In this document: one piece after another, positions 26,737-52,132 of the stretch
Layout: the number at the start of each line of letters is the position of its first letter
How positions within the stretch are numbered: the stretch's first letter is position 1
Assembly: GCA_020536535.1 (NCBI GenBank)
Contig: JAHLWZ010000275.1
Location: 62,001-126,000 of the forward strand
Source of the DNA: Pelomyxa schiedti
Taxonomy: Eukaryota; Protista; Evosea
Direction of reading: 5' to 3'
Length of the DNA stretch: 64,000 bases
Position numbers and translations under genes: made by a program
Notes under the pieces: model-generated
Databases searched by the model: none
Seen by the model: only the letters and a program-made list of their open reading frames with translations
Told to the model about the DNA's origin: nothing

Positions 26737-26741
<5 letters not shown>
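26200..26741 (-). CDS. Small ubiquitin-like domain protein (exons 26741-26384, 26300-26200)
   Basis: MKLFIRT...SETVESLRHRI...RLVHGDTELDDIETIDHY/GIGDGDTLSLVL follows the UBL pattern once a phase-1 intron is removed. There is an Ala/Pro-rich internal insertion. Confidence 0.7.
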
Positions 26742-28519: not shown

Positions 28520-28874
28520 CAACCTAGTACCTAGTTGGCCCAAAAAAACCATCAGGTCCAAATTAATAATCCTCCCTGGAAACAGTTGGAAAGCGAAAAG
28601 TGGGAAAAAAAAAAAAAAAACCAAAAACCAAAGCAACAGGCAAAGCAAAGTCGTCCCATGTCGCAGTACTGTGCATGCCCGTTGGAATGCAAAACACCGA
28701 TTCTAGTGCGACCAGGCCAAAACGCCAATGAGGAGGTGGGGGGGGAAAAAAAAAAAAAACCCGTAACCACAACGCAGCAACACCTTGGTTCCTTGTGGAA
28801 CTTGTTGGCGCCATCTTAGCTTTGCTTTTGTTTCGTTCCCACACTAACATGGCGGCCAGGTGGAGAGACACATC

Positions 28875-31800
28875 ATGGCAGAGCACGACGGACCCAGGCA
28901 CGACGAGCCCGGCACGGGGCCCCAGGCGCCAGTGTACCCGCCGCCGCCGAGCCGCTACGCCAGCCATCCCGGCACGACGAACTCCAACGCGTTAACAAGC
29001 GGAAGCGGAGGCGGCGGCGGAAGCCCCAACAACGCCGCCCCGCACACGCCCCCTCGCGAGAGAGGGCTTACGGGTTCCCCGGAACTGCGTTATGGGACGA
29101 GTACGGAAGCTGCTCACCGAGGAAGCCCTTTGTCCCCGACTCTGTCTGTGTCTCCGTCATCGCCCTCTTCTTCCTCTGGATATGGAAACAACGCAATATT
29201 TCCGGAATCTCCTATGTTGAAAGGAAGTGGCGCACTGGTGACTTCCAATATAGGGATGCTGAGTGGTGGTGGTAGTAGTACTGAAAGCACATTGCAGGAC
29301 CCGGGTCGATCCAGCAACACTGCCAGAAGTTTCTACCCAGGCCCTATGACACCGCTTACTGCAGCTTCTCCACCCAATCAAAGTACAAGTCCCAGTATTC
29401 CTGGACAATCTGCAATGCTACCACCGGCGATTCCTTGTGTCAGCAACGTATGCCAACCAGTTCAATCGGGCACAGTTCCCAATCCCAGCTCCCGTTCGAG
29501 TCTTAATACGAAATCTACCAGCAATTCACAAGCTGAAACCAAAGAAATGGAAAACCAGTCTCGTCTGCCAGCAAAACGTACAGATAAACCTGATACTCAG
29601 GTGGAACAACCATTGCCAAAGAGAAGCAATGCAGTATCATACGCTAATTTCCCGTACAAGGCAGCACCATCAGATCGAGCGATAATCATCTGCAAAACTT
29701 GCAATACCAGAGTGAAGGACAAGAAAGAATTTGACAATCACTCTTGCCCACATAAAGTAATTGCCTATATCTGTCCAAATTGTACACCCGAGGCCATATT
29801 TCCATCAACTCAGTGTTATGCTGCTCATGTCAAGAAGCACAAGCAACAAACCCCTTCTGTACCACCAACACTACAACCACAAGCAACAAACCTGGTCACC
29901 AATTTTGCATCCACAGCCTCATCCAATCTATTGCCAGCACTACCACCCGTTCAACAAGCCCCAATAACTTATGCCAAATTTTCAACACCTTCCAAGCCGT
30001 TGTCAACACAATTACCGCCTACACAGAACCATTCTACAGCACCAACAGTTCCTCCACATTCACCACTGTGGACGACAGCACAATTCCCGTGCTTTCATTG
30101 CAATGAGGTGTTCCAGGACCATCGCTCGATTGAGGCACACAAGAGAGAAAGGAATCATGTCTGCGACACAAAGTGGCAGTGCCGCCACTGTGGAATTCTC
30201 TTTGAAGCCCAACAGTCACATGCTGCACACATTGGACAAGTGAAGCAGGTATTCCCCATCCATAATCACAAATTAGGATTGTTCATTAATCGCAACCCAA
30301 AGGAAACTGGACTGAACGAAAAAGACACCGCGATGGTCATCAAACGTATTGAAGACACATTGCAGAAAATCAGTGTGAAGCTTCTCCCACCACTCGAGCT
30401 GATTGACATCAAGCCAGGGGCCCACCACCTTTCGAGGTCTTCAGAGAAAAGAACCATTGCTCTCGCGAACAGTGATATTAACCCTCTGGCAGTGCCTGAA
30501 CTGCAACCATACCAAGTGTTTCCATCACAGGTGAAAGAGGCTCATAAATTCTTTGAGATGATCCAAGGGGTGTGGAAGGACCTTCCAAACTCATGCCACT
30601 GTCTGGACGTGCTGATCCTTGTCCCACCACGAAACACACTGTTCAACCAGACACTCGAGAGAGCGAGGAGCTTTGAGGAACACATCACCAACAGCGAGCA
30701 GTTTCATGGGATGAGGAGGAACCTCCGCATCCGAGTTGTCAAGGGAAACAAGTACAAAGATAGCAAGAATGCCACAAAGGAGTTTTTCGACAAAGCTGAA
30801 AGGTGCAAAGACGATCCCGAATACTTCTTTGTCATCATCCACGACGAGTGCCACTGGGGTGCAAAGTGCGTCAACAAAGGGAAGAAACTTGGTCGGATTG
30901 GATCCATCCTCCGGGATGCCCTTGTGATGCCTGGAAACAACATGTTGACACTCCAGATTTCAGCAACTGCGTGGAACCAGATCGAGCTTCTGAGGCAATC
31001 TTTTGGGTCTGATGAGAAGATTGGAACACTCGAGAAGCACGTGCATGGGTGGACCGAGGTTGGTGGTCCGGGGATGGAATACATTGGTCGCCAGAAGCTG
31101 ATGGACCTTGGATGCATCATGCAAAGCGACTTGATTTGCCCTGGGAAGTGCCAGGAACTTTGCAACGAGCTGTTTCCTGATGACCCGTTCATGTACAACA
31201 AACTTGTTACCTCGAGTGACTGGCCCACCTTTGTGAGCATCATGACGTATGCTGCTGCGTTCATCAAGCGCCATTGTGAAGAGGTTTCTCTCCTCTTTTG
31301 TGAAAAGGTGGTCACTGACTGAATCTCCTCCCCAAAAAACAACACTATACAGTATTCTGAAGTCGTTCCCAGTGAAAGATGGATCCAAATTGTGGACTGT
31401 CCACACACCCTATATGCAGTGAGGCTGATACAACAGGGTCACGTTGTTGCTGTGAGGCTGCCGAGCAACCTGTCACGGTGTTACGGAAAAATCATCTCGC
31501 GGCTCCTGAAAGGGTTGGGAGAAACAAGATTCTTCTGTGTTCATGATGCCATTGACTCTGACCACGATGGCTCCAAAACACTCGTGACTGAGGAATGTGC
31601 GGTCCGTCTCGCGGAGTTGCAGGGAAGGAGAAAGGCCACATTCCGGAATTACCAAGACCTCAATGGGCTTCCTTGCCTGCTCGTTCTCGTTGAGAAGGTA
31701 TTCGTTGTGTGTGCTTTTTGAATGGTTTTGAACGTGACCATTGTGACTTCTTCCTTTCCTTCTTCTTTCTCTCCCTTTTTCACGTCCGTGATTCGTTTCC

Positions 31801-33154
31801 TCCAACAACATTCAGGCACGAATGGGAGACACAATGCCAAGCAACTTCAAACTGTTTGACCTGAGGGCACGTTACCTCACTCCAAAGTTTGTTTTTTCGG
31901 CCTTCTTGCAGGACATTGGACGTGCATTCAAGTGGTGCAAATCCGGCACAACGGCAAACGCCTGCATTCACGTTCTTCTCAATTCAGTGGCATTTCAATA
32001 CGCAAAAGATCCTGTTACCGCATTACAGAATTCAAATGGTCAGTTGGACCCTTGTTTGAGGAAGACTGGTAAAAAATCCTCGTCGGATCAGCCATCTCCT
32101 TTGCCAGACCCGTCTGATCAAGAAGTGGGTGATTTCTCAATTATTTCCTCCAGATTTACATCATTTTAGGAATCACCGGAGTCACTTGCAGTTTTCTTCC
32201 ACCCGAATCTCATTTGGGAGCCGTCGGAGAAGAGTTCTTGGAAATTTCTGGAGGAGAACTTGAGTGACCTGTCAGACAAACTGAAGCAACGGTTTGTGAT
32301 CTCAGCTGAGCCTCAGATCGGCAAGACTGGTGCTTACCTCCACTTCATTGAGCTCCTCGTGAATCACTTTCACCTCCCGCCTGCTAACCCGGAGGAGGAA
32401 AAGTTTTACGAAGTTCTCGAGAGCCTAAAAAACATGGATCCCAGTGAACTCCACTCCAAGTTGCAAGCCGAACCGGAAACACTCCAGAATTGGCAGCTTC
32501 TGCATCGGTATCAAGACCAGCAATTTAGTACCCTGTCTGCAAGGGAAAGAATGTCGGCACCAGAACACCAGAATGTTCCATCAACACGAGCAACCAACTT
32601 CATCAAATTCCTGTGCTTGAATGGTGGCCCTCTGAGCAAATTACCCGTGTGCCTTGTCGCGGACATGGGCTGTGGAACTTGTGCACTCGCAAAGAATTTG
32701 GCATGGCAACCTCAAATACAGGTGTGAGAGAAATGATTACTGCACCACCATTAACTTGGAAAATGAACAGGTTGCGAACTATGACCATTCTATCAAAACA
32801 GACTCAGACAGCAGGTTCACAGTTCAGCAGTGCAACTTCCTCCACACGCCATCCAACGCAGGGGTGTTTGATGTTGTTGTGTTCAGCATGTCACTGAGCT
32901 GGGGCGGCGCCAGGCCAGAGTTCGTTCAAAGCGCCATCGCGGAGGCAAAGAGGATACTCAAGCCGAATGGGTATGTCTTTGTGGCTGACGAGAAGAACAA
33001 CTGGTGCTGGCAACGTGGTGGCGTCTCACAGGCCGTTGTGGACGAATTCACCAAGTCCGGATTCACGCTGCTGGAGGATGGGCACAAACCAAGTCCAAAT
33101 GGAAGATACTTTTACCTTGCTGTGCAACTGAAGTCTGCCTCAGGCAAATGGTGA
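28875..33154 (+). CDS. Paralog 1: zinc fingers + circularly permuted SF2 helicase + Rrp8-like class I SAM methyltransferase
   Basis: Inferred introns: 30249-30302, 31284-31352, 31698-31815, 32125-32169, 32722-32770. Motifs in order: four ZnF-like units, VLILVPPRNTLFNQ, IIHDECH (30843), ISAT, LVLVEKARMGD, QDIGRA (31909), SAEPQIGKT (32308), VADMGCG, FDVVVFSMSL, EAKRILKPNG. Confidence 0.85.
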
Positions 33155-33336
33155 AAGGTTGTGCGCCAACGCACACAAGTCCCACAGTGTCCCGGTGCTC
33201 TGCATCCTAAGTAAGTAAATTTATAACCTTGTTGTCTTTACACCTTTATCAAACCCCACGAAGTCTTCCAAACCGTTGGAGGAAAAAGCAACAACAAAAA
33301 AAAAATCCAAAAGAGGCTCCGGGTTGCGTTTTTTCC

Positions 33337-36300
33337 ATGTCGACGTATGTCCCTTGCCCCATCTGTAACCAAGAGGTTATGGTTCCAGAAGACCATAGCC
33401 GCGACTTAGAAGTAAGCCTCTTTGGGTTTCGCCTTACCCCCCCGATACTACTCACTTCCCCCTCTCCTTTCGTGTCAACCAAACTACCCACAGATCGGCC
33501 GACACATCGACGCGGGGTGCCCTTGTGTCGGTTCACGTTCTCCATGGCCACAGGCACCAGTTCACCAGCCTCCGCCCAGTAGTCACATGAACGTATCATC
33601 AACTGCCGCAGCTCCCCCCACAGCCACAAGCACAAGCGCAAACACAAACGCCAGCAAGGTCGAAGGGGCTCCCGCGCTTCCGGGTACAACTGACTTTAGG
33701 GCTGGTATTCCGCCCGACGACCTCCAGCCATCACCCCCGCGGGGCCTAGATCCCTACGGGGACGATTTGCTGGATGACGAAGTAGAATTCGAAACTGAGA
33801 CCGAGTCCGGGTTCGGCGCTGAGGCGGATTCCAATATAAGTTCCGGCGACTTCGCACACAGCCCGATACATTATCTCCATAGAGATTATGGTGATGCCCC
33901 CGCAGAAACAACCACTGCTACTACTTCTTCTTCTGCTACTTCTACTTCTTCTGCTACTTCTACTTCTTCTACTACTACAGCAACAGGAGCTCCAAGACCA
34001 ATCCCCAATCCTCCAGCGCTTTCGATGCCTGGAAATGGTCAGCCTCAAAATGACGTGCCCACCAACGAAACTGAAATTGAAAGTGAAAGTTCTCTGCCAC
34101 TGAAACGTGTCAACATTTCTCGTGCGGAAAAGGAGGCAGGGGCACCACCGCCAAAGAGAGGTTATGCACCATCTACTAAGGTGAATGCGAAACCAACGCA
34201 GATGGCACCATCTGATAGCAATGATAACATAGGGTCTACGTCTCACACGATGCCAACCAAAACCCGCCGCCCGACCTATAGGAAAAAGCCATTATATACT
34301 CCAATTCCTGCAATTTTTGGTTGTGAGGTTTGCAAAAAACGGATGGATAAGAAGGAATTTCGCGTGCACCCATGTCCAAACAGAACACCCTTCTATATCT
34401 GTCCGACTTGCACACCGGAGTTAACGTTCTCCACGTCTCAAAAATATGCTTCTCATGCCAAGAACCAGCACCATCCCAGACAGGCTGCTTCCCCAGGTCC
34501 ACTCTCACCAATCAACCAGGTCAATGACTCTGTATGCACAACCGCACTGCCCAAGCCCTCGTCAGAATCACCAGCACCAACCAGTAATTCCACATCAGCC
34601 GATACATTGTCAATACTACCGCCACGGGGAGCACCAACCCATAGCTCCGCATTGCCAACCGAACCTCCCAATAGGCTACCGGCACATTTACCGTCACAGC
34701 GAGCTCCACTAGAGCTCACTGTAGATACAACCAAGTGGACAACCGCACAGTTCCCGTGCTCTTGTTGCAAGGAAGTGTTCCAGGAACACCGCTCGATTGA
34801 AGCACACAAGAGAGAAAAGAACCATATCTGCGACACAAAGTGGCAGTGCCGCCACTGTGGAGTCCTCTATGATGTCCAACATGCACATGCGGCGCACATT
34901 GGACAAGTGAAGCAGGTAAAAACCACTCCTTGTTGTTCTTTTCTTTATGAGTTTTTCCAAAATCCTCACGATAAAAAAAAGGAAATTTGGAAGCACGGAC
35001 TAAGTGAAGAAGACACTGAGACTGTAATCAATTGCATTGAGATGAAATTGAATGCCACCTTGCAAGCCATCAGTGGGCAGCTTCTTCCCCAACTCGAGTT
35101 TATCGACATCAAGCCAAAGGCTCACCACGCTTCAAAGGAATCAGAGGACAGAATCGATTCCCTTGCAAACCCACACATTATTTCACCAAATCTGCCGCCA
35201 TATCAAGTGTTTCCATCACAGAAGAGAGAGGCCGACAGTTTCTTCAGGATGATCCAAGGGGTGTGGAAGGACCTTCCAAATTCATGCCACTGTCTGGACG
35301 TGCTGATTCTGGTGCCACCACGAAACACACTGTTCAGCCAGACACTTGAGAGAGTGAGGAGCTTCGAGGAACACATCACCAACAAGTTTCATGGGAGGAG
35401 AAACCTCCGTATCCACGTTGTCAAGGGCAACAATTATCACAAAAGCAAAAAAGCAACAAAAGACTTTTTCGACAAAGCTGAAAGGTGCAAAGACGATCCC
35501 GAATACTTCTTTGTCATCATCCACGACGAGTGCCACTGGGGTGCAAAGTGCAGCAGAACGGGGAAGAAACTGAGCCGAATTGGATCCATCCTCAAGGATG
35601 CCCTTGTGAGGCCTGGAAACAACATGTTGACACTTCAGATTTCAGCAACTGCGTGGAACCAGATCGAACTTCTGAAACGATCTTTTGGGCCTGCCGAGAT
35701 AGGGATGCTGATGGCCCACGTCCGGGGGTGGACTGAGACTGGTCCTGATGACGGCATGGAATACATTGGTCGCCAGAAGCTGATAGCACGTGAGTGCATC
35801 ATGCGAAGCGACCTGATTTGCCCTGAGAAGTGCCAGGAACTATGTAACGAGCTGTTTCCTAACGATTCTTTCATGTGCAACAAACTTGTTACCTCGAGCG
35901 ATTGGCCCACCTTTGTGAGCATCATGACGTATGCTGCTGCGTTCATCAAGCTCCATTATGAACAGGTTGGTGCACTCCTCTCTTTTATTACGCGGACTCA
36001 GCTCTCACCCCATACAGCATCCTGAAGTCGTTCCCAGTGCAAGATGGATCCAAATTGTGGACTGTCCACACACCCTATATGCAGTGAGGCTGATACAACA
36101 GGGTCACGTTGTTGCTGTGAGGCTGCCGAGCAACCTGTCACGGTGTTACGGAAAAATCATCTCGCGGCTCCTGAAAGGGTTGGGAGAAACAAGATTCTTC
36201 TGTGTTCATGATGCCATTGACTCTGCCAACGAGCTTCGCTCCAAAACACTGGTTACTAAAGAATGTTCAGCTCACCTTGCAACTTTGCAAGGAAGAGACA

Positions 36301-37827
36301 AAGCGATATTCAACAATTACCAAGACCTTGATGGTCTTCCTTGTCTGCTCGTTCTTGTTGAGAAGGTATTTTGTGTTTTTTAAAAGGTTTTTATTTGTGT
36401 ACTTCCTTTCCCCAAACCAACAATTCCTTTTCCCCTTCCTCTTTTACTTAACCCTTCAATAATATAACAAATAGGCGCGAATGGGAGACACAATGCCAAG
36501 AAACTTCAAACTGTTTGACTTGAGGGCACGCTACACAACTCTGAGGTTTGTGTTTTCAGCATTCTTGCAGGACATTGGGCGTGCATTCAAGTGGTGCAAG
36601 GTTGGAACACCTGGTCAAGACTGTATCCACGTTCTTCTCAATTCCGAGACATATCACTATGCGGAAAACCCTGTTGAGGCACTCGAGAAATCGAATGGGC
36701 AGCTGGACCGCTGCTTAAGGAAGACTGGCAAAGCAGACACCTCTGATCAAGTACGCGCATTCTTTGACAGTGGTTTGCCTAATTTTTCTCAATTTTAGGT
36801 TCAGGATGCAGACTCACCAGAGTCGCTTGCAGTTTTCTTCCACCCAAATCTCATTTGGGAGCTATCAAAGGAGAGCCCATGGAGATTTATGAAGAGCGTC
36901 ACTGACCTGTCAGACAAACTGAAGCAACGGTTCGTGATCTCAGCTGAGCCTCAGATCGGCAAGACTGGTGCTTACCTCCACTTCATTGAGCTCCTCGTGA
37001 ATCACTTTCACCTTCCGGATTTCGACATGGAAGAGGAACTCTTTTACGATGTTCTCCAGCGCATAACCAACATGGATCCCAGTGAACTCCACTCCAAGTT
37101 GCAAGCCGGAGAACCGGAAACACTCAAGAACTGGAGGTTCCTACTTCACCACCAAGGCATGCAATCCTTGGCAAGTAACGATCCATTGGCACAGATTCCA
37201 GCGGCACGAGCTGACCGCTTCGTCAGATTCCTGTGCCTCGAGGGTGGCCCTCTGAGTTGTTTACCTGTGTGCCTTGTTGCGGACATGGGCTGTGGAACTT
37301 GTGCACTAGCAAAGAGGTTGGAACCCTGGCATCCTCACATTCAGGTTAGTGCCAATGACTTGTTGCCAAAAACCAAGAATTAAACAAATAATTACAGGGC
37401 TTCACAACAATCAACTAACTAACGATGCAATGAATAGGTTATGAACTACGACCACATCGCTGAAACGGAACCCGACATCCGGTTTACAGTGCAGCCGTGT
37501 AATTTCGTAGTCAGCACTCCATGCAACGCAGCGATGTTCGACATCGTTGTGTTCAGCATGTCACTGAGCTGGGGAGAAGCCAGGCCCGAACTTGTTCAAC
37601 ACGCAATCGCGGAGGCAAAGAGGATACTCAAGCCAAATGGATATGTCTTTGTGGCTGACGAGTTGAACAACTGGTGCTGGCAATCTGGTGGTGTCTCACA
37701 GGCCGTTGTGGAACAATTCACTGGGTCCGGATTCACGCTGCTGGAGGATGGGTTCCAAACGAGTGCCAACCGAAAGTACTTTTACCTTGCTGTGCAGCTG
37801 AAGTCTGCCTCAGGCACAAAATGGTGA
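33337..37827 (+). CDS. Paralog 2: UBZ-like finger + zinc fingers + circularly permuted SF2 helicase + SAM methyltransferase
   Basis: Inferred introns: 33412-33493, 34916-34981, 35966-36017, 36366-36474, 36751-36798, 37345-37437. Motif order matches paralog 1 (DECH at 35525, EPQIGKT at 36946). The reading frame is intact. Confidence 0.85.
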
Positions 37828-37936
37828 ACGTGATTCGGAATTTAAATTATTTTTTTCTTTATTGTATTTGTGGACCAATTTAGGCTACCGTACGACAACG
37901 TTCTTTAAGAAATAACAAAAAAAATAGTTTTGCGGG

Positions 37937-40900
37937 ATGTCGGACAACAACCCCCCGGTCGCTTTTACCGAAAACCCGAGGAATACGGTAGTCGCTACTT
38001 GCACAAAAAAAAAAACAACTTCGCAACTCACTCGTATTCCCCACGTATAGAACCCAAACCCCAGCGCCATCGAAACCTCTACGACCACGTCGCCAGCGAC
38101 GTCGACCTCGTCGGCTAGTCCTGCAAGTAGCCCTCCCAGCCAGAACCCAGTCGCCGATCACGTCCAGCAGCCGCGCAATCCCTGCGACAACGACGCTGCT
38201 ATCGCGGCGGCACTGCAGCAGCGGGAGGAAAACGGCGGCCGGGAGCTCCCCCGACTACCGGAAGAAAACCGTGAGCCTCTGTTGCGTGATACTGGTCCAG
38301 TCGCCAAGCACGAGGCGGTGAGTCCACCCAATGCCCCTGACACCATCAATTGTGGAGGCACTGCTAAGCTGGAAGCTGGGTATCACTTACCAGCAAAACG
38401 CAATTATGAATATGGGGATGAACCTCCATCTGCATCGCCTCCAAAGAGACCTACTGCCGTAGCCGCTAGTTTCCCGTACAAGCCAGCACTCCCAGATAGA
38501 GCGATTATCATTTGTAAGACCTGCCAAACCAGAGTGAAGGATAAGAAAGAATTCCTCAGTCACAAGTGCCCAAACAAAGTAATCGCCTATATCTGTCAAA
38601 GGTGCACATCCGAGGCCATATTCTCCACAACTCAGAGTTATGCTGCTCATATAAAGAACACACACCACTTAAGACAACACACCACTTCTGCACAACCACT
38701 AACAACAAACACGACATCTATAATCACACATCCCAATCCATTACCAATACCAACACCTGTGTCACCATATCCAACACAAAACACACCTTCCCATGCACCA
38801 CGAAATACACACACTCTAGCTGTAGATATGACAAAGTGGACGACAGCACAATTCCCGTGCTCTGTTTGCAATGAGGTGTTCCAGGACCATATCTCGATTG
38901 AAGCGCATAAGAGGGAACATAATCACATCTGCGACACAAAGTGGCAGTGCCGCCACTGTGGAGTACGATATGACGTCCAACATGCACATGCGGCACACAT
39001 TGGACAATTGAAAAAGGTAAAAACTGCTTCGTGGCACTCACTGATTAATCACTACCAAAGGAAATTGGTAAAAACAGATTAAATGACCAAGACACCGAAC
39101 GGGTCATCGGACTCATTGAAGAGAAATTGCAGAAAATCAGTGTGCAGCTTCTCCCTTCACTCGAGTTGATTGACATCAAACCCAATGTTCCCCACCCTCA
39201 AAAGTCCTCAGGGGGCACAACCAACTCCCTTGCGGACCCACACTCTAGTTCGCCAGATCCGCATCCAACAGCACCCGAACTCCCACCGTACCAAGTGTTT
39301 CCATCACAGGAGAGAGAGGCCCGCAAGCTTTTCGAGATTATTAAAGGGGAGTGGAACGAACTTCCTAACTCTTACAGAAGCCTGGACGTGCTGATCTTGG
39401 TCCAACTACAACTGTTCGATCAGACACTGAATAGAGTGAGGAGCTTTGAGGAACACATCACCAACAGCGAGCAGTTTCATGGGATGAGGAGGAACCTCCG
39501 CATCCGAGTTGTCAAGGGCAACAATTACAAAGATAGAAAACATGACACAAGGGAGTTTTTTGACAAAGCTGAAAGGTGCAAAGACGACCCTGAACACTTT
39601 TTTGTCATCATCCACGACGAGTGTCACTGGGGAACAAAGTACACCAAAAAAGAGAAACCTGGTAGGCTTGGCTCCATCCTCAAGGATGCCCTTGTGAGGC
39701 CTGGAAACAACATGTTGATACTTCAGATTTCAACAACTGCGTGGAACCAGATCGAACTGCTGAAACGATCTTTTGGGTCTGAGAAAATTGAGGAGAGAGA
39801 GAAGATTGGGAAGCTTGAGAAGCACGTGCATGTGTGGACTGAGACCGGTCCTGATGACGGCATGGAATACATTGGTCGCCAAAAGCTGATGGATAGTAAG
39901 TGCATCACCGAAAGCAACTCGTTTTGCCTTGAGAAGTGCGAGGAACTTTGTAACGAGCTGTTTCCTGATGACCCATTCCTGTTCAACAAACTTGCTGCCT
40001 CGAGTGACTGGCCCACCTTTTTGAGTCTCATGACGTATATTGCTGCGTTCATCAAGCGCCATTGTGAAGAGGTTGATTCCCTTTCCTTTTCTCCCGTTTG
40101 TGCCTCACCTTTAAACAAAACAGTATTCTGAAGTCGTTCCCAGTGAAAGATGGATCCAAATTGTGGACTGTCCACACACCCTTGAAGCAGTGAAGTTGAT
40201 AAAACAGGGTCACATTGTTGCTGTGAGGCTGCCGAGCAACCTGTCACGGTGTTACGGAAAAATCATCTCGCGGCTCCTGAAAGGGTTGGGAGAAACAAGA
40301 TTCTTCTGTGTTCATGATGCCATTGACTCTGACCACGATGGCTCCAAAACACTCGTGACTGAGGAATGTGCTGTCCGTCTCGCGGCGTTGCAGGGAAGGA
40401 GAAAGGCCACATTCCGGAATTACCAAGACCTCAATGGGCTTCCTTGTCTGCTCGTTCTCGTTGAGAAGGTGTGTGCTTTTTGAATGTGGAGGAGTCTTCC
40501 CCCCCCCCCCCCAACCGACTGACTGACAACCAGGCACGAATGGGAGACACAATGCCAATCAACTTCAAACTGTTTGACCTGAGGGCACGTTACCTCACTC
40601 CAAAGTTTGTTTTTTCGGCCTTCTTGCAGGACATTGGACGTGCATTCGAGTGGTGTCAGGCTGAAAAACCTGGAAAACCTACCCAAGACTGTATCCGCGT
40701 TTACGTCAACTCAATGGCATATCAGTATGCAAAAAACCCCGTTGAGACACTTCAGTGTTCCAATGGCCAGTTGGAACCTTGCTTGAAGAAGACCGGCGGC
40801 AAAAAATGTCCATATGAACGAGTGAGTTCTTTGACAATGTGGTTCCCCCCAGACTTACCTCAATTTTAGGTGCCGGACAACGCTTTCCCAGCGTCGCTGG

Positions 40901-41894
40901 AGGTGTTCCTCAACCCGAATCTCATTTGGAAGCCATCGGAAATGGGTTCCTGGAAATTTCTGGAGGAGAACTTGAGTGACCTGTCAGACAAACTGAAGCA
41001 ACGGTTTGTGATCTCAGCTGAGCCTCAGATCGGCAAGACTGGTGCTTACCTCCACTTCATTGAGCTCCTCGTGAATCACTTCGAACTCCCGCCTGCTAAC
41101 CATGAGGAGGAAATGTTTTACTATGTTCTCGGGAGCCTGACAAACATGGATCCCAATGAACTCCACTCCAAGTTGGAACGGGGCGACCCAGAAACACTCC
41201 AGAATTGGAGATTTCTGCTTCAGTGCCAAGACAAACTGTTTGAGGCAACGTCGGAAAGGGAGCGACTGTTGCTGATACCACCTGAAGATCAGACGGTTCC
41301 ATCATCACGAGCAGCCAGCTTCATCTGGGATCTGTGCTTTAAACACGGCCTTCCGCAAGAATCCCTTCTGGACGGCTCCCCCGTGTGTCTTGTTGCGGAC
41401 ATGGGCTGCGGAACTTGTGCACTCGCGAAAAAGTTGAAAGAATACCACCCCCAAATACAGGTGCGCGATCACATAATGTAAGTCCCACCCAACCACTATT
41501 CATCAACAAACAGGTGACCAACTTTGACCACACATACGGGGAAGAGGACAGCTGCTACAAAGTGGTGCCGTGCAACTTCACCAACACTCCAGCCCAAGAG
41601 GGAGTGTTTGATGTTGTTGTGTTCAGCATGTCGCTGAGCTGGGGCGGCGCCAGGCCAGAGTTCGTTCATAAAGCAATCGTGGAGGCAAAGAGGATACTCA
41701 AGCCGAAGGGATACATCTTTGTGGCTGACGAGTTGAACAACTGGTGTTGGCTGGGTGGCGTTGACCCGGTGCCGCGTGCGCTCATGGTAGAATTCGCAAA
41801 CCAGGCAATCTCGCGGATTGGGAATGATGGGAGCTTGTTCATCAAAGAGAGAAGCATCGATAGGAAGTACTTTTACCTGGCAATGCACACGTGA
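37937..41894 (+). CDS. Paralog 3: MIU/UIM-like motif + zinc fingers + circularly permuted SF2 helicase + SAM methyltransferase
   Basis: Inferred introns: 37988-38050, 39017-39060, 40072-40123, 40469-40533, 40822-40869, 41461-41513. DECH at 39616, EPQIGKT at 41020, VADMGCG. The reading frame is intact. Confidence 0.83.
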
Positions 41895-42031
41895 CAATTT
41901 CCGGCACAACGAATTGTCGTACAACGAAAATTTTTTCTCTGTCCACTGCTTTTTTCTTTTTGTTTTTGGCCACGGAATTGCCCCGAAAAAAAAAACACTT
42001 GCGAAAGTTCGAGTTACAACAACGCAAGACG

Positions 42032-42892
42032 ATGTCTCAGAAGTGCCCACGTTGCACCAAGTCCGTCTACGCAAACGAGCGGTATTTTCCTTTCTTTTGC
42101 TTCCTCCTTTTTTTTCCCCAGTCGGTGCCTAGCGCGCGAGTTGAGAGAAAATGGAATAACTTTGTTTGCGTTAGAGTTTCTGCTCTTGGAAAGGCTTTCC
42201 ACAAGTCATGTTTCAAGTGCATGCAGTGCAACGGCGCCCTGCAGCTCGGTAGCGAGTGCGGCGGCCCTGATTCGTTGCCCTACTGCAAGAAATGTCGGTT
42301 TCCTTTTCCACCTTATTTTAAAAATAAAAAAGCTGCGAAATGTTCTAACTTACACTTCTCATTGAAGGTTACGGCCAGAAGTTCGGCCCTAAGGGTTTCG
42401 GTGTGTCTTCCCCCTGTTTTGTAGAAACCCTAGAATTACTTTGGTCGTGGAGTCTTAGGCATTTATTAACATGCAAAAACAGGACACGGCTCAACAGAGG
42501 CAACTAATTCGCAGAGGCGACAACCCGGCGCACCGGCTCCCAATGTTGCACCCAGTGGGCCTGTTGTTGAGTGCATGATGGATAAGGAGGCCGCCCAGTA
42601 TGATTCACCACCAGAGCCTGAGCCGCAACCAGAACCCACACCAACTCCTGTTGCAGTGACTACTCCTGCTTCACCCCCTTCAACACCCACTCCAGCTGCT
42701 ACTACTGGGCCCAAGTTCTGTCCAGGTTTGAATCTTTTTCGTCATTGTTCTTATACTAAACAAACTCCCACCCTTATCTGCTAGAGTGTGGATCAAAAAC
42801 CACTGGTGCCAAGGTAGTTGCCCCGTTTTGTTTCAAAATATTGACACTGCCCCACATAGTTTTGCCCAGAGTGCGGAGCCAAGCTGATTTAA
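42032..42892 (+). CDS. LIM-domain (CRP-like) protein with Pro/Thr linker and C-terminal double zinc ribbon
   Basis: Spliced sequence reads CPRCTKSVYANER/VSALGKAFHKSCFKCMQC...PYCKKC/YGQKFGPKGFG. The C-terminus is KFCPECGSKTTGAKFCPECGAKLI, with TAA at 42890-42892. Confidence 0.85.
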
Positions 42893-43219: not shown

Positions 43220-44393
43220 ATGCTTGTCCCCGATTTTTTTGTGGCCGCGCACGGGTCGTCCAGTGGCTTCAGTGGTTGTCCCATAATTGTGGTACATTGG
43301 CTCTGCCATTTGTTGTTTCCTCGTTTGGTTCGGGCTCCATCCGGACACCAACCTCCCTGAACCACCGACCGACCGCGATCGACTCTAACCCCCCACAAAA
43401 CGACAGCCGGCTTTGACTATCGGCAATGTACCGCAGATGGCCTGTGACCTGCTGATTCACAACAGCCACGCGAACCGCGTTGGCTACATTTGCTCCGACG
43501 ACGTTGTTGCCACATGCGGCGTGGATGCCTACACTCCCCCGTCTTCTGGCGTTGTTCATACTTCTGTGGAGTGTATTGACTTTCTCCCCCTCTTTTTGGG
43601 AATATTTTCTTTCTCTGCTCGTCGCCTACATTTTCCTTATCGAAATAACTTAGTGTATGAGTGTCCCAGACCCACGGGTAGTGTATTCATTCTCCAGCAA
43701 CGCTCTCCAGTGAGACAGGTGATTCCCACCTTTGTATATGTTGCTCCGCTGATTCATCTTTCTTTTACTCCAGGGTTGTGGCTTGCAATATGCCGCTAGT
43801 CTTAGCAAGTGGCTAAAGGACTCTGGGTTTTCCCATGTTGTATTGTTAGTAAGTATTGATGCTGGGAGAGTGCCACCACAAGAAGGGTACCGTCTTTGGC
43901 AATCCTTACATAAATAATCAAACCAATCCCAAACCGAAGGCAAAGGAATTAATTGGTTAAACTGCAGCTCATTGAGATTCTTTGTGAATAACCTGGAGAG
44001 TGCACTTTCGACTCTCTCCCCCATGGGTCAGAAAGTTACCGAATCCGACCTTCTTATGCTCTCTGAGGATTCACCTTCACTCGCGTAGGTGTCCATTTGT
44101 GTTGCCCATTCTCACCCCCTTTAGACTGTGGAAGTTTTCCAAAGAGAGTGCCTTACCCTTTGTTGTATTGGAAACAGTATGCCACGAGGGAGACAATGTA
44201 GTTGACGCAGTACAATTCACCTGCCAGGTTAATGACTATTTGCATCTGTTACCAGGTAGGCAGAACAAACCCCTTGACTGCCAGTAACCCTCTGTTTTCA
44301 TCAGTTACGGAAAACCCAAGAATAACTGTGCCTCCATCCTGGAGCCATACCGTACTCTGGGGTTCTGTTGGCCACACAACAACACTCTACTGA
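43220..44393 (+). CDS. PSMG2: Proteasome assembly chaperone 2 (PAC2 family), multi-exon
   Basis: MLVP...GCPIIV/PALTIGNVPQMACDLLI...RVGYI matches the PAC2 N-terminal pattern (PAVSVGNVGQLA.DL). The C-terminal PPSW...LWG matches P.SW..LFG. Confidence 0.8.
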
Positions 44394-44432
44394 GCACAAC
44401 AACACACCGCTCCTCCAAATGGCTGATTAAAA

Positions 44433-44599
44433 AAAACACCAGACCGCCGATCCTGAGCCAATAACGAAAAGTACAGCGTTCCGGTCTGTTGATTATTTTA
44501 TTCAGGCAAAATACACTTGGCAGAATAAAACACCAGACCGCCGATCCTTAGCGACGATAACGAAAATGACAGCGTTCCGGTCTGTTGATTATTTTATTC
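44433..44599. repeat. Two tandem copies of an approximately 70-nt hairpin element (44433-44503, 44527-44599); candidate small ncRNAs
   Basis: Near-identical units ACACCAGACCGCCGATCCT...ACAGCGTTCCGGTCTGTTGATTATTTTATTC. Each has a CAGACCG/CGGTCTG terminal stem, and the differences are confined to the loop. Confidence 0.8.
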
Positions 44600-45449: not shown

Positions 45450-47565
45450 TTAGCGGCGTTTTTTGAATATTGAGCCTTCCTGGTAGAGGTATGAATCGCC
45501 GTTCACAGTGAATCTTCTTCCTTGAGGAAGGGTACGGTAGTGTGTAGGCACGTTTGCGTGAAATTGGTTGGAGGGAACCATGAAAGGAGGTGTGGGGAGT
45601 AATGGGTTCCTCGGGTTTGGTGTGGGACTAATTGGACGTGGGTTGAGTTGTAAAGGTAACTGATCGGAATTGAACCGCGGAGTTGGACTTTGAGTCATTC
45701 CCCTTGGCGTTGCATGTACCTACTTGTGTTAGAAACATTAAGAGAAAGTACTTGCTAGACCACAGGAAAAGTGCAGTGAGCCGCTACAGGCGACGTGCTA
45801 GAAGCTATGGATGGTGTCTGCGTGTCTGGGTGTGAAACAATGGGTTGCATTGGAGGGATGGTGCGCGTTTCAGCGGGTGAACTGTGGAGGCCTTCATAGC
45901 GCGGCTGTTCACAAATACTTGTACAACCTCTGAGTGCATCTCTACCAGCCGGCTCGACCAAGGTCTCATCACTTCTGAGGGACGAAAAAGGAATCTGCAC
46001 CTTGGAAAATAGGGTAGAGAACATGCTGGGTGGGTCTTTGTCCTCGTAACGGGCCCTGGATTGCTGAACAGGGGCAGTATATGCTTGAGGAAGATCCCAG
46101 GGCAATACATCTCGTAATGCAGGAGGAGGTGGCAAAGGTGGAAGAGGGGGGAGCGTAGTATGGTCGTTGACGGGTATAGTTGGCATTGGGCTCTGAAGGA
46201 ATTGAGTATCAACAATCCCTAGTCGAGTTTGAAGTTGTACTAGAGCGGATTCTCTCTCCTTCAATTTGGTATCAAAGGCGGCAACTAACTGTTTTTGAAA
46301 ATATAACTCATTATTAGTAGCCCTGGCCTTCTCTGCGCGGTGGGTCAATTTGGTTTCCAGGTTTTCCATCTCTTCTTGCAGAGCCACAATCTGTTTCTTC
46401 ATTTTCACATTTTCTTCATCATTTTCAGTCGTTTGTGACCGCTGGTGTGCTTTGAGTAGCTCTACGTATGCGCGCAGCTGTTCCACTTCACTTCTGAGCT
46501 CTCTTGCTTCGTCTAGGGCAGTCTGAAATCTCCCAACCTCTACCACTTCCGCTCTGAATTGCGCAAGTTCAGCTGAATCAAGTTTCAGTTGAACCACCTT
46601 CTTTTCTAGATTTGCGCATTCAAGCTTCCATTTAGATGCCTCTTCTGTGAGAGTTTTCTTGGCGACTTGCTCGGCCGATACACGAGAACATAATATTTCT
46701 ACCTGGTGTCTGAGTTGAGCTGCTACATCTTCGGCTGTATGCAGTTTGTTCTCTGCCTCAGTAAGGGATACTTGACTTTTTCCTGTTGCCTCCTCGGCCA
46801 CACCACAGCGTTGTTTCCATGTCTCCGCTTCTGATCTGTTTGCACTGATTTGGTTTTTGAGCCGTGTTATCTCTGATTCCATATGTCTCAAGGACTGCGT
46901 CAAATCTGTTTCGGTTTTTTTGTTGGATTGCTTGAGCTGTGCTAAGGCTTGCTTGGTGGCACACACTTTTCCCTGTTCGTCCAGTAGTTGGGTTGCCAGT
47001 TCAGTTTTACTCTTTCTCTCACTATCAAGTAATTCTTCTAGAGTCTGGCATCTTTGGTTTTGTCGTCTCAACTCTTCATGGAGTGTCAAGATAGTGGTTT
47101 CATGATTGTCCAGTACTTTCTCAGGTGAATTTGTTATTTGAATGCAGTTTGTGTCGGCTTCTGCACGTTCAACATCCATAGGTGGTTGCGTCACAGTAGA
47201 GTGAATGTGTGTATCCTGCTGAATGATAGGTGCTTCATTAACAGCTGTGGGAGCCGAGTCACAGTCTCGATGGACTGGTAAATCCTCCGGAACGTTGAAA
47301 GGTACTGCTGCACAAGTTCCCTGTTCAGGTTGTTGGTCAAGGCTCTCTCCATTCTCTTTCGGTTGGTTCCTTTGCATAGAAGGAGGAGAGTGCATCAGTA
47401 TGTCTTTCATTAGCTTCTCGTGTCTGTGTGCGAAGTGGTGAAGTAAGAGTAGCACGGAATCTACGCCTCATTTAAACGCAAGAGGTTGGAGAAAGAAAAA
47501 ATTGTACCATAGAAACCCCGCGATGACAGTAGACAAACGACAAGCGTTACTACCCAAGTCGTCAT
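45450..47565 (-). CDS. Coiled-coil protein of unknown function with a hydrophobic N-terminus and Pro-rich C-terminus
   Basis: 566-aa ORF 45755-47455 with long heptad-rich E/Q/K/L stretches. A phase-compatible first exon (47565-47508) and last exon (45719-45450) were inferred. Confidence 0.7.
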
Positions 47566-47802
47566 TCCGACGACAATGCTCGCTACTGGTGTAAATCTAA
47601 GAGCCTGTGGATCTCGCCACAACACCGATGCGCCGTCGTGCTGCCTTTGTTTGGTTGTTATTGGTTTTTTTAACCTTTGGCATTCATCATCCTGGCGTCC
47701 AATATTTTGGCAGGAATCCCCTGCGACACGAAAGTTAACGCGAAGAAGACAAAAAAAAAAAATTAGAGCGAGTGGTTATTTGGATACTGCTATAACTTGT
47801 CG

Positions 47803-47886
47803 TTCTGACGCTCTACCAGTTGAGCTACCCCACTTTTTGATGACTAGTGGGGGTTGGCGTTGATCCAACGACCTTCAGACCTTCAT
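47803..47886 (-). tRNA. Circularly permuted tRNA-Phe(GAA)-like gene: 3' half (47886-47845) upstream of 5' half (47834-47803), 10-nt linker
   Basis: The 5' half is AGTGGGG TA GCTC AACTGGTA GAGC G TCAGA. The upstream 3' half is (A)TGAAGG TCTGA AGGTC GTTGG ATCAACG CCAAC CCCCACT A. Acceptor stem 7/7, D stem 4/4, anticodon stem 5/5 and T stem 5/5 are all Watson-Crick. A T-run follows at 47762-47751. Confidence 0.8.
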
Positions 47887-48062
47887 AGACTGGGTTTTTT
47901 AATCGAGGAAGCAGTAGAGTCCCTTTTGGCACTCTCCCCAGTCTTTTTTGCCAGCGTCGTCCTTCTTCCCCGTGCGAATTTTTCCACGAACATCATTGTG
48001 GGAACCTTTCTCAAAAATCGGCCCGTCAACCAACAAACAAAACAAAAAAACCACGCAAAGCA

Positions 48063-49302: not shown

Positions 49303-52132
49303 TCACATGCCAGAGGAAGCAGGTGTGCCAGTTTGTGTGCCGGTGCCTAGTTCATCAGCTGCTGTGCTGAATGACTGGCCTGCATCGTCGCTGTCTCCGC
49401 CGGGGAATTCCTCTTCATCGCCGTGGAAGACGGCTGTGTCGTCGAGTGAGTGGGGCGCCGCGAGTATTCCCGAGCGGGCCAAGGGGGCAATTGGGGGTGG
49501 CGGGAGCCGAGAGGGTGCCGTGTTGGTGAGCTGCAGACTAATTTATTTATGGGTGTGGTGGTTAGATAGACCACGCAGAATGTTTGGGCGCCATACTGTT
49601 TAATGAGAGTATCGAGGTGAGCAAGGGTGTCTGTTTGTTTTTCAGCAATCTCACCGGCAAGGCTGCCGTTAAGCTCCGCGACTTGCTTGGAAACTTGTTC
49701 ATTTGTGGCAGAAATACTAGATAAGGTTGGTGCAATTCACGTACACAATGTGTTAAACCTGGCAGTATCGACAAGGAGTTTTTCTAAGCTCTTGGGTGCG
49801 GTTTGGGAAAGATTTTGAATCAGGGGGTATGTTTCGTTGAAGTACTTGAACCCTTGGAGGTTCCTAAATTCTCGTTAAGAACTATTAAAACCTCGGCTCC
49901 ACACAGTTGGTTAAAGTAGTTCCCAAGTGTTTCAAGATCTTTGTGTAAAATAAGAAGTGTGGCTTTGGTCTCCCTAAACATGCTGATGAGAAGTATTGCA
50001 AAAAGATGGAGACACACTCCGTTATTCGGCCAACAATTTGCTCTTTCCTGGTTTTTTTTTTTTTTGTTTAGTCGGAATTTAGGGGAAAATGGATTTCTTC
50101 ACCTTGCCTCAGCTTTTGTAGTGGCGTCAGTGGAGGTAGAAACCATGACAGAATTAAATTGTTGTTGCAGTTGATCAATGCTATTCTTTATAGCTGTTCT
50201 AGTCTCTCTATGGATATTGGTAGCAATTTCAGTAGTGTGACAAAGGAGAAGTACTGTGCTGATCTAGCAATAGCTTCGTTGAAGTCCACCTTAGGAGTAG
50301 CCTCTGCGAGCCTTGATAGGAGTGAGGTTGGAGAGAGGATTGCTAGCTTACTTGGAAACAGTCCCAGGAAGTTGACCACCGACAAAGTCTTGTAGTGTTG
50401 CCGTGTGCTTTGTTAAAGCTGTGGTAATCCTATTCAAAGTTACGGTCATTTTGTACTAAAGGAATTACTGTTTTGTGGACTGTTCGAGCTCTGTGGAGAG
50501 AACATCAAACCGAGACTGCATTGTGACCAGTCTGAATACACATCAGAGAAACAAAGAAAATGGGTTGCACACTGCTCCATAGTTTGCTTTAACTTTTCAG
50601 ATGTTTTTACAAGACTAGTGGTTGTGTCCGTTATTCCAGAGGCAACTGCAAGTCGAGTGTTTGCTTGTTCCTCAAATGACAACTTTGGTTGTCAGCGTTA
50701 TTACTTTGGGGGTTTCTTATACCTTAACTTGGGAATTATTGTCATCGACCTGCTTCACGAGCTGGTTGATGCGCCCAAGAGATGCCTCGATACTTTGCAC
50801 TACCACAGTAAGCTTTTGGTCAGCACCTTCTTGTTTGGCTGTGGTTTGGAAATCTTGCTTCCTGTGCGCTGTCAGAGTCGTCAAAACATGGATCTTCTTT
50901 TACATTTGTTGAGATTGTGTGTCCACCTTGTTTTCCAGGTCCCCACTGTACACAAGCGTTAAATTATAAAGTGTGAAGTAAGGGAGCTACATTTTGTTGA
51001 CAATTTCGGTTGCTTGTTGATGCTGATACCTGAAAGAGTTGGAAAAGAAAAGTAACAAAAACAAAGAACTACAGTTGAAGTGTCTCCGTGATTTGCTGGC
51101 ACATGGCCTTCACATCCTTTTCAATTTGTTGATTTGATGCACAATTTTAACAAGAGATTACCTGAGAGATAGCAGTGCTTATAGAATGTTGCAAAAGATT
51201 AATTAACTCCTGCCGTTTGTGTGCTTTCTCCTCTTGGGATGTGCCATGATGCTGTGAGAATTCTCTGAACGCAGCTCTAACGGTTTTCTTATTATCTTCA
51301 ACATTTCGAAGCATTCTGGCACTACAAGTAGCAGACAAAAAAAGTCAGTCCATATGTACCAATGAAGGTGAATCAACCTTAGTTCAGCTCGTAAATCACG
51401 CAAGGAAACCTCTAGTTTGCGCCTTACCATCCATTGCACAACAATGGACACGAGAATAACAATTGTACAGCCTTGCATAAATAGAACAGCTCCCCGGATT
51501 AAACCTACAACCAACCAATGTTAGCTTACCAACTCTAAGTTCAGGGAAGAGGAGAGAGAAAACAAAGGGAAAGAAAAAAAAAAAAAAAATTGCACTCATT
51601 TCACCCCCCACCCTCCATTCCTCGTAGACACACTTGTCTGTGGATCCCATTGTGCCGCCTTGTTGCTGAAAAGCAGTGTGAACGCGGGCAGCAGAACCAA
51701 CAACGCAACATCGAACGTCATCCACACGAACCCGCGCCCCTTCTTCGGCGGCAACGGCGGCGGCTCCTTCTCCTCCACCATCTCCGTCTCCATCCCCATC
51801 TCCATGCCCATGCCCATGCCCATGGCCCCCTCGCCCTCGCCCTCGCCCCCCGCGTACCCCTGCCCCCCCTCCACGTACTCCCCGCCCTCGCCCACGGCTC
51901 CCTCCGCGGCCCCGTCGTAGCCCCCCTCCGCGCCTCCCAGCTCCATGGCCATCGCCCGCTGCTGCTGCGGCGGCTGCTGCGAGTCGTCGTAGTCGGCGCC
52001 GCCTTCGTATGTGTTGCTGCTGCCCGGAGTGAACCCCGCGCACAGGGGCTGCGCCACCGCGTCGGTAGATCGCGACGCTCCGTCGACCTCATCGCCCCCG
52101 ACAACTTGCTCCCCGGTGTTGGCGTCGGCCAT
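49303..52132 (-). CDS. Unknown membrane protein: acidic Gly-rich N-terminus, two TM segments, coiled-coil/helical region, acidic C-terminus
   Basis: ORF 51596-52132 has TM FVWMTFDVALLVLLPAFTLLF, and the next exon has TM VVGLIRGAVLFMQGCTIVILVSIVVQW. Further helical exons run down to a TGA at 49303-49305. Joining these into one gene is inferred. Confidence 0.55.

Follow-up and report, generated by a model that had tools for sequence, protein, structure and literature searches.

On the minus strand of the window, that is, of the whole 64-kb stretch of DNA that was analyzed, positions 47889 to 47786 carry a circularly permuted tRNA-like element that is real, rare and beyond what chance would produce. 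From 5′ to 3′, the element runs from a T arm through a closed acceptor hairpin of 7 bp to a D arm, and the ends of the module pair to form an anticodon-type stem of 5 bp and, beyond it, a closing helix of 6 bp (Table 1). The permuted topology and the tRNA ancestry were supported by the analysis. The proposal that this is a functional permuted tRNA-Phe gene, made when the DNA was read from its letters, was not supported by the defining features tested at this single locus, and a tRNA-shaped non-coding RNA or a rearranged relic fits better than a working tRNA-Phe gene. The explanation tentatively favored here, with somewhat less than even confidence, is that of a tRNA-derived, circularly permuted, tRNA-shaped non-coding RNA with a YrlA-like topology, and not a decoding tRNA.

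Architecture and tRNA likeness of the element

The sequence-only reading had described two tRNA halves in inverted order, a linker, a trailer and a run of 12 T residues (T12), and every one of these details was found on the minus strand at the place given for it. The pairing that it had reported across the permutation (acceptor 7/7, anticodon stem 5/5) was confirmed as Watson-Crick, and adding the D stem (4/4) and the T stem (5/5) brings the total to 21 Watson-Crick pairs out of 21. Two features had been missed, namely the 6-bp closing helix and an end-to-end match to the Rfam family YrlA. The nucleotides of the tRNA core and elbow (U8, A14, G18, G19, A21, G53, U55, C56, A58 and C61) are in place; in the T arm, G53, U55, C56, A58 and C61 are retained and A54 and G60 are atypical. 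The dinucleotide UA stands between AGUGGGG and the D arm and a single G between the D arm and UCAGA. A 41-nt trailer separates the 5′ half, at its UCAGA end, from T12, and no T4 run occurs inside the unit, T12 coming after it.

Table 1. Coordinates of the permuted element and of its flanking signals, in 5′ to 3′ order of the minus strand except for the last row, which lies upstream
Feature	Position in window	Strand	Remarks
Closing helix, 5′ strand CUAUGA	47883..47888	-	Pairs with UUAUAG (47795-47790); overlaps A32-U33-G34-A35 of the sequence-only reading
UGAAGG	47885-47880	-	Read from the sequence
AGG	47880..47882	-	3-nt side of the 3×8 internal loop between closing helix and anticodon-type stem
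UCUGA	47875..47879	-	3′ strand of anticodon-type stem (positions 39-43); 5/5 Watson-Crick with UCAGA
AGGUC	47870..47874	-	Variable-loop equivalent (44-48)
T arm GUUGG / AUCAACG / CCAAC	47853..47869	-	Aligns to the YrlA T stem-loop
Acceptor 3′ strand CCCCACU and discriminator-equivalent A73	47845..47852	-	7/7 Watson-Crick with AGUGGGG
10-nt linker GUCAUCAAAA	47835..47844	-	Closes the acceptor hairpin; CCA absent, T-run absent
Acceptor 5′ strand AGUGGGG (1-7)	47828..47834	-	
D arm GCUC / AACUGGUA / GAGC	47810..47825	-	With A14, G18, G19, A21
UCAGA	47804..47808	-	5′ strand of anticodon-type stem (27-31)
ACGACAAG	47796..47803	-	8-nt side of the internal loop; a BHB would require 0 unpaired nt here
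UUAUAG	47790..47795	-	3′ strand of closing helix
27-nt tail	47763..47789	-	From closing helix to T-run
T12 run	47751..47762	-	First run of at least four T 3′ of the element on the sense strand; plausible Pol III terminator
AUUAAAAAA	47900..47909	-	Sole A/T-rich (putatively TATA-like) stretch in the upstream 50 nt

The in silico rejoining of the halves, which had been proposed as a check, gave a 73-nt sequence called tRNA-Phe(GAA) by ARAGORN, and the same rotate-and-rejoin procedure applied to 20,000 random segments of the window gave no tRNA call at all (0/20,000). Similarly, a tRNA profile (18 real tRNAs) run over the 64 kb ranked the two halves first and second (E 0.0045 and 0.98) and returned nothing else, and no second copy of either half was found in the window with up to three mismatches allowed. 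In the unrejoined window, both ARAGORN and Rfam at its gathering thresholds were silent, an example of how such elements escape standard annotation. The isolated 107-nt RNA was predicted to adopt, as both its minimum free energy (MFE) and its centroid fold, the closing helix plus three hairpins (z = -2.1); the closing helix is short and A/U-rich, and a helix of at least 6 bp between these flanks arose in 8% of shuffles.

An assembly or chimeric-read artifact that fused two tRNA fragments is extremely unlikely as the source of this arrangement, considering that the halves are exactly complementary over 12 bp, in two helices, within one 104-nt stretch that is shorter than any read, and that the flanks are unique sequence.

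Regarding transcription signals, the window contains 19 runs of at least eight T residues on the strand of the element, which makes T12 modest evidence of a terminator, the more so because homopolymer runs are common in the intergenic DNA here. A 47-nt T run was observed at 26741 on the plus strand, and many A or T runs of 11-20 nt occur between 48 and 61 kb. No TATAWA sequence or TATA box was found in the 50 nt upstream of the element, and A/T runs are common in the window. Moreover, the B box precedes the A box within the element, which inverts the order of a type-2 Pol III promoter.

Junction, processing signals and tRNA identity

The permuted tRNA genes described so far have their junctions at positions 20/21, 37/38, 50/51 or 59/60, linkers of 1-74 nt, and a leader and trailer that form a bulge-helix-bulge (BHB) or relaxed BHB motif; they are also preceded by a TATA-like element and followed by a T-stretch, as in Cyanidioschyzon merolae (Soma 2014 review, PMC3978253). 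The element resembles these genes in several respects: its 3′ half precedes its 5′ half, the 10-nt linker falls in the 1-74 nt range, the cloverleaf is complete, and it has a T-stretch on its 3′ side; the A/T-rich stretch on its 5′ side may recall the upstream element of C. merolae (PMC3978253). Together with the tRNA-Phe(GAA) call of the rejoined cloverleaf, its U33, G37, A73 and AGGUC, the lack of partners for the halves and a fold that looks constrained, these features speak for a functional permuted tRNA-Phe(GAA), whose precursor, after cuts at 31/32 or 32/33 in both strands, would pass through a circle, be opened by RNase P and tRNase Z at its acceptor, receive CCA and be charged with Phe.

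The junction and its surroundings argue against such a gene. For the GAA anticodon to be formed, the junction must lie at 31/32-32/33, or up to 35/36 with C33, and the 31/32 and 32/33 options cannot be told apart because the trailer also begins with A; none of these is a position known from permuted tRNAs. In addition, a junction at 31-33 falls within the 6-bp helix CUAUGA/UUAUAG, outside any bulge. An exhaustive scan of all 4-bp leader-trailer helices detected no hBHBh′, hBH or HBh′ motif at any junction, in agreement with the earlier caveat that a strict bulge-helix-bulge could not be built by eye, and the 6-bp closing stem was the sole leader-trailer helix in that scan. On the leader side, helix AUGA, a 3-nt bulge (AGG) and stem UCUGA are arranged as they should be; the trailer side leaves 8 nt unpaired against the 0 needed for BHB or hBH, which results in a 3×8 internal loop. 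The claim of a functional permuted tRNA with a junction at 31-33 was not supported, the site lying inside a helix, at no known position and at a locus without any BHB-type motif. The accompanying statement named red and green algae, a chlorarachniophyte nucleomorph and Thermofilum as the known hosts of permuted tRNA genes; reports of such genes still come only from algae and archaea, and this adds to the case against a permuted tRNA-Phe gene.

A second processing route was evaluated at the canonical 37/38 site, where the eukaryotic endonuclease ruler would place the cut. The leader geometry AUGA/AGG/UCUGA puts the 3′ cut between the second and third nucleotides of the bulge, just before G38, and the profile alignment sets the break near position 37, both of which point to this site. 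Cutting there would yield the loop ACGACAG with the anticodon GAC (Val), which leaves C33 and G38 in the loop; the central helix has only 2 of its 4 pairs (ACGA/AUGA), and the anticodon-intron pair is absent, A32 standing opposite A. Furthermore, the usual Val anticodon of eukaryotes is IAC and not GAC, and a permuted tRNA processed in this manner is highly improbable.

With respect to tRNA identity, the rejoined sequence has GAA, U33, G37, A73 and the 5-nt variable loop AGGUC. An elongator tRNA-Phe is expected to carry G20, G34-A35-A36, A73, Y32, A38, T54, an R15-Y48 Levitt pair and, usually, G1-C72. At the conserved and identity positions of eukaryotic elongator tRNA-Phe(GAA), U20, A32, G38, A54, A15·C48 and A1-U72 were found instead. 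Among them, U20 replaces G20, a tRNA-Phe identity element, A32 and G38 are very rare, and A1-U72 with A54 are hallmarks of eukaryotic initiator tRNAs that disfavor elongation. These substitutions bear out the caveats attached to the sequence-only reading, in which A32, G38, A1-U72, A54 and G60 had been singled out as atypical. A non-decoding role is favored because A1-U72 and A54 disfavor elongation. The Phe label itself depends on 3 nt, whose U33/R37 context is expected by chance 1 in 8 times, and the D arm and anticodon stem are presumably as close to tRNA-Lys(UUU) as to tRNA-Phe. An anticodon-like triplet at the edge of a permuted module is, in general, weak evidence for a decoding function. 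Considering the junction, the missing BHB-type motifs and these departures from elongator identity, a functional permuted tRNA-Phe(GAA) is improbable.

Genomic setting and origin of the module

The window represents nuclear DNA of an intron-rich eukaryote. It includes a cytoplasmic dynein heavy chain 1 gene (67-17500, minus strand) with many introns of 30-90 nt and AG/GTYTG or GTAAG donors, whose closest database relative, from an ENA metagenome contig, is only 78% identical, and the genome seems to be unrepresented in protein libraries. On the plus strand, three to four tandem ORFs with a GREB1 circularly permuted SF2 helicase domain (PF20692) extend over 28860-41481 and look like a local paralog expansion. 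The closest recognizable genes on the low-coordinate side are represented by a LIM-domain exon (41891-42424, plus strand) and a weak PAC2 (proteasome assembly chaperone 2) exon (43413-43799, plus strand), the latter without a homolog in a word-indexed search. A unit of about 95 nt also occurs twice in tandem, with 93-95% identity, at 44428-44599 (plus strand). A 566-aa ORF (45755-47455, minus strand), starting about 300 nt downstream of the T-run, encodes a coiled coil and a Pro-rich C-terminus; it has no Pfam domain and no homolog among 1.84 billion representative proteins.

Alternatively, the element could be a non-functional relic. In this case, rearrangement or retro-insertion would have removed the outer halves from a tandem (dimeric) pair of tRNAs or from a fragment of its RNA, and the surviving middle piece, composed of the 3′ half, the spacer and the 5′ half, would be silent or have no role. 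Tandem tRNAs naturally provide the order from T arm to D arm and match both the same search pattern and the YrlA model. In addition, the element is present in a single copy without detectable conservation, its type-2 Pol III promoter order is inverted, and A54, A15·C48, A32, G38 and G60 look like decay. The start of the trailer (ACGA) and the start of the 3′ half (AUGA) may represent overlapping copies of loop positions 32-35 inherited from two parents, and T12 may be incidental given the A/T runs that are common locally.

On the other hand, a relic requires two independent breakpoints, each in the anticodon loop of one of two copies, and no remnant of the outer halves is detectable. In fact, the search for decayed partner halves in the 150 nt on each side gave no significant remnant, the similarities seen by eye being non-significant as well, and the claim that no conventional partner half lies nearby was upheld over the same 150 nt. 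The event is not obviously recent because the outer halves have left no trace, and the inner fold is nonetheless flawless. About five to seven positions of the element are atypical, all of them outside the stems, and the 21 stem pairs are all intact, without a single G·U. Five neutral hits would all spare the 42 stem nucleotides with a probability of 0.014 (about 0.01-0.03), a value that assumes a canonical parent tRNA, and this sparing of the stems points to selection on the fold. The closing helix, placed exactly at the ends of the module, is a further point against decay. Overall, a relic is a rather unlikely explanation, second in probability to the tentatively favored one.

In sequence collections, the permuted order with the T loop of the element was recovered only from bacterial or phage tandem tRNA arrays; no relative of the element was found in metagenome, viral or prokaryotic collections, and the exact 3′-half core was absent from the prokaryotic and viral ones. 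The nearest related genome (ENA ERZ21831265 ctg82076l, the source of the dynein with 78% identity) showed no tRNA-like element in the 31 kb available; collinearity with it ends at the dynein gene, and no orthologs of the genes neighboring the element were found. A candidate second copy at 50541-50681, suggested by a repeat search and MAFFT, scored below every shuffled control and was discarded as noise.

Two further observations were made in passing. A full-length YrlA match of 31.3 bits was recorded at L003 389-520 (minus strand), on the tRNA-rich JGI contig Ga0213868_10009934 (34% GC). No complete tRNA is recognized there by ARAGORN or by the Rfam tRNA model, and the match may represent either a YrlA-like RNA of a phage or a disrupted pair of tRNAs. 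Within the element, AAG/GUCUGA resembles the local splice donors and is followed 37 nt on by a UAG acceptor (47883-47844, minus strand), which gives a typical local intron length and is probably a coincidence. An exon-intron reading of this segment was rejected, the upstream frames being closed by stop codons.

The YrlA-like topology and known systems

YrlA RNAs are bacterial and phage RNAs in whose tRNA-like module the T arm is followed by a closed acceptor hairpin and then by the D arm, and their ends form a stem that binds the Ro60 ortholog through the motif GNCGAAN0-1G (PMC4201824). According to the YrlA crystallographers, most YrlAs "resemble circularly permuted tRNAs" and derive from dimeric tRNA transcripts, and tandem tRNAs form a class of false positives for YrlA (10.1101/312249). 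In a permissive Rfam search of the 64 kb, YrlA (RF02553) was the sole match at E of at most 1, with 37.4 bits (E 1.3e-4) against a gathering threshold of 69, and the alignment ran end to end (model 1-114 of 114). When tandem tRNA junctions were placed on the YrlA model, they scored 27.3 and 31.3 bits, 6-10 bits under the element.

The resemblance to YrlA comprises the terminal stem, the internal loops, the anticodon-type stem, the T arm, the closed acceptor hairpin and the D arm, which is identical to the consensus apart from loop length, and the 7-bp acceptor is also present in M. smegmatis YrlA, which is an RNase P substrate. An origin from dimeric tRNA, as proposed for YrlA, would fit the element too. 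Unlike YrlA, the element sits in eukaryotic nuclear DNA, its alignment lacks the middle helix of the Ro60 module, and its T stem departs from the nearly invariant YrlA T stem. The motif GNCGAAN0-1G was not found in the element; the closest sequence, UAUGAAGG, differs at 2 of the 6 specified bases. Membership in the YrlA family is judged, among other criteria, by a Ro60/TROVE gene on the same strand within about 4 kb, and no TROVE or VWA match was obtained in the larger ORFs scanned up to 4 kb on either side (approximately 43.0-52.2 kb). The 566-aa ORF was examined as a possible adjacent Ro60 gene and rejected as a coiled-coil orphan without a Pfam match, and the other ORFs within 4 kb lack TROVE. 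The topology is therefore shared with YrlA, and membership in the YrlA family is not supported.

Metazoan Y RNAs have a helix with a GGUCCGA 5′ strand and no apparent tRNA-like domain (PMC4201824), together with a 20-30-nt terminal stem, a conserved bulged C and an oligo-T placed directly after the stem (PMC4030889). The element is similar to them in being a small RNA with paired ends, probably transcribed by Pol III with an oligo-T terminator, and, loosely, in the likeness of its UGAAGGU to the GGUCCGA-type 5′ strand. It differs from them in lacking the bulged C, in having 6-bp and 5-bp helices in place of a long terminal stem, in the 27-nt tail before T12 and in being the only one of the two to have a tRNA-like domain, and Rfam Y_RNA gave no match at E of at most 10.

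A bona fide eukaryotic Y RNA or YrlA ortholog that tethers a Ro60 protein would explain why the full-length YrlA match is the only Rfam match in the window, why UGAAGG occupies the Ro60-motif site in the alignment, and why GA over UU, at the top of the closing helix, is reminiscent of the GGUCCGA helix of metazoans (PMC4201824). However, the altered motif UAUGAAGG, the missing bulged C and 20-30-nt terminal stem (PMC4030889), the divergent T stem, the lack of TROVE in the ORFs scanned within 4 kb, the nearly equal scores of tandem tRNAs and the tRNA-like domain not apparent in known metazoan Y RNAs (PMC4201824) make such an ortholog very unlikely.

The tentatively preferred explanation, a tRNA-shaped non-coding RNA, envisages one transcript that would start just upstream of 47889, end at T12 and probably be made by Pol III. 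This RNA would fold into an L-shaped tRNA body in which the T arm and the D arm flank a 7-bp acceptor helix capped by an 11-nt loop, and its anticodon arm, having no terminal loop, would run through the 3×8 internal loop into the 6-bp helix formed by the ends of the RNA, the topology seen in YrlA RNAs of bacteria and in permuted pre-tRNAs before processing. By analogy with M. smegmatis YrlA, RNase P and tRNase Z might be expected to open the acceptor hairpin, because the full 12-bp acceptor/T-arm stack and an A73-type discriminator are present. The result would be a two-piece tRNA-like particle that could act as a mimic, decoy or tether through tRNA-binding proteins. The sequence, the pairings, the topology, the uniqueness and the lack of a splicing motif were directly observed, and it is an inference that the RNA would be transcribed, fold in vivo, be processed and have a function.

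This explanation draws on the 21 of 21 pairs, the core nucleotides, the closing helix in the MFE structure, the full-length YrlA alignment and T12. Counting against it are the YrlA score (37.4, below 69 and near those of tandem tRNAs), the 8% of shuffles with a comparable closing helix, the missing Ro60 motif and nearby TROVE, the 27-nt tail unlike that of Y RNAs, the inverted A and B boxes without a TATA box, and the lack of relatives in the collections and in the 31 kb of related genome. In a broader formulation, that a non-algal eukaryote has an expressed and selected permuted tRNA-shaped RNA, be it a eukaryotic YrlA-type mimic or a BHB-independent permuted tRNA with its junction at 31-33, the proposition has close to an even chance.

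The relevance of the element lies in its position between two families. So far, permuted tRNA genes have been found only in a few algae and one archaeon, and tRNA-shaped Y-like RNAs only in bacteria and phages; an origin from dimeric tRNAs has been proposed for both. The element fits neither the processing signals of the former nor the binding signals of the latter, and it is found in an unrelated intron-rich eukaryote. It might therefore represent an independent origin of this architecture, providing a testable case of the passage from a tRNA dimer to a new RNA, or it might be a clean example of the precursor before decay. If it is expressed and conserved, either reading would be the first outside algae or bacteria.

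Among known systems, the permuted tRNA genes of Cyanidioschyzon merolae, Ostreococcus/Micromonas, the Bigelowiella nucleomorph and Thermofilum pendens share with the element the leading 3′ half and the short linker, as well as the closed acceptor hairpin, transcript ends that pair beyond the anticodon stem, the downstream T-stretch and the inverted order of the A and B boxes. Unlike these genes, the element has neither BHB nor relaxed BHB, its GAA junction at 31-33 lies in a helix and not at a known position, its loop and several identity and tertiary positions are atypical, and its host is a non-photosynthetic-looking, intron-rich eukaryote. Dicistronic or tandem tRNA genes, in turn, have the same succession of T arm, spacer and D arm and are picked up by the same search pattern and, at 27-31 bits, by the YrlA model; in contrast to them, the element wholly lacks the outer halves, and its two inner halves make up one cloverleaf.
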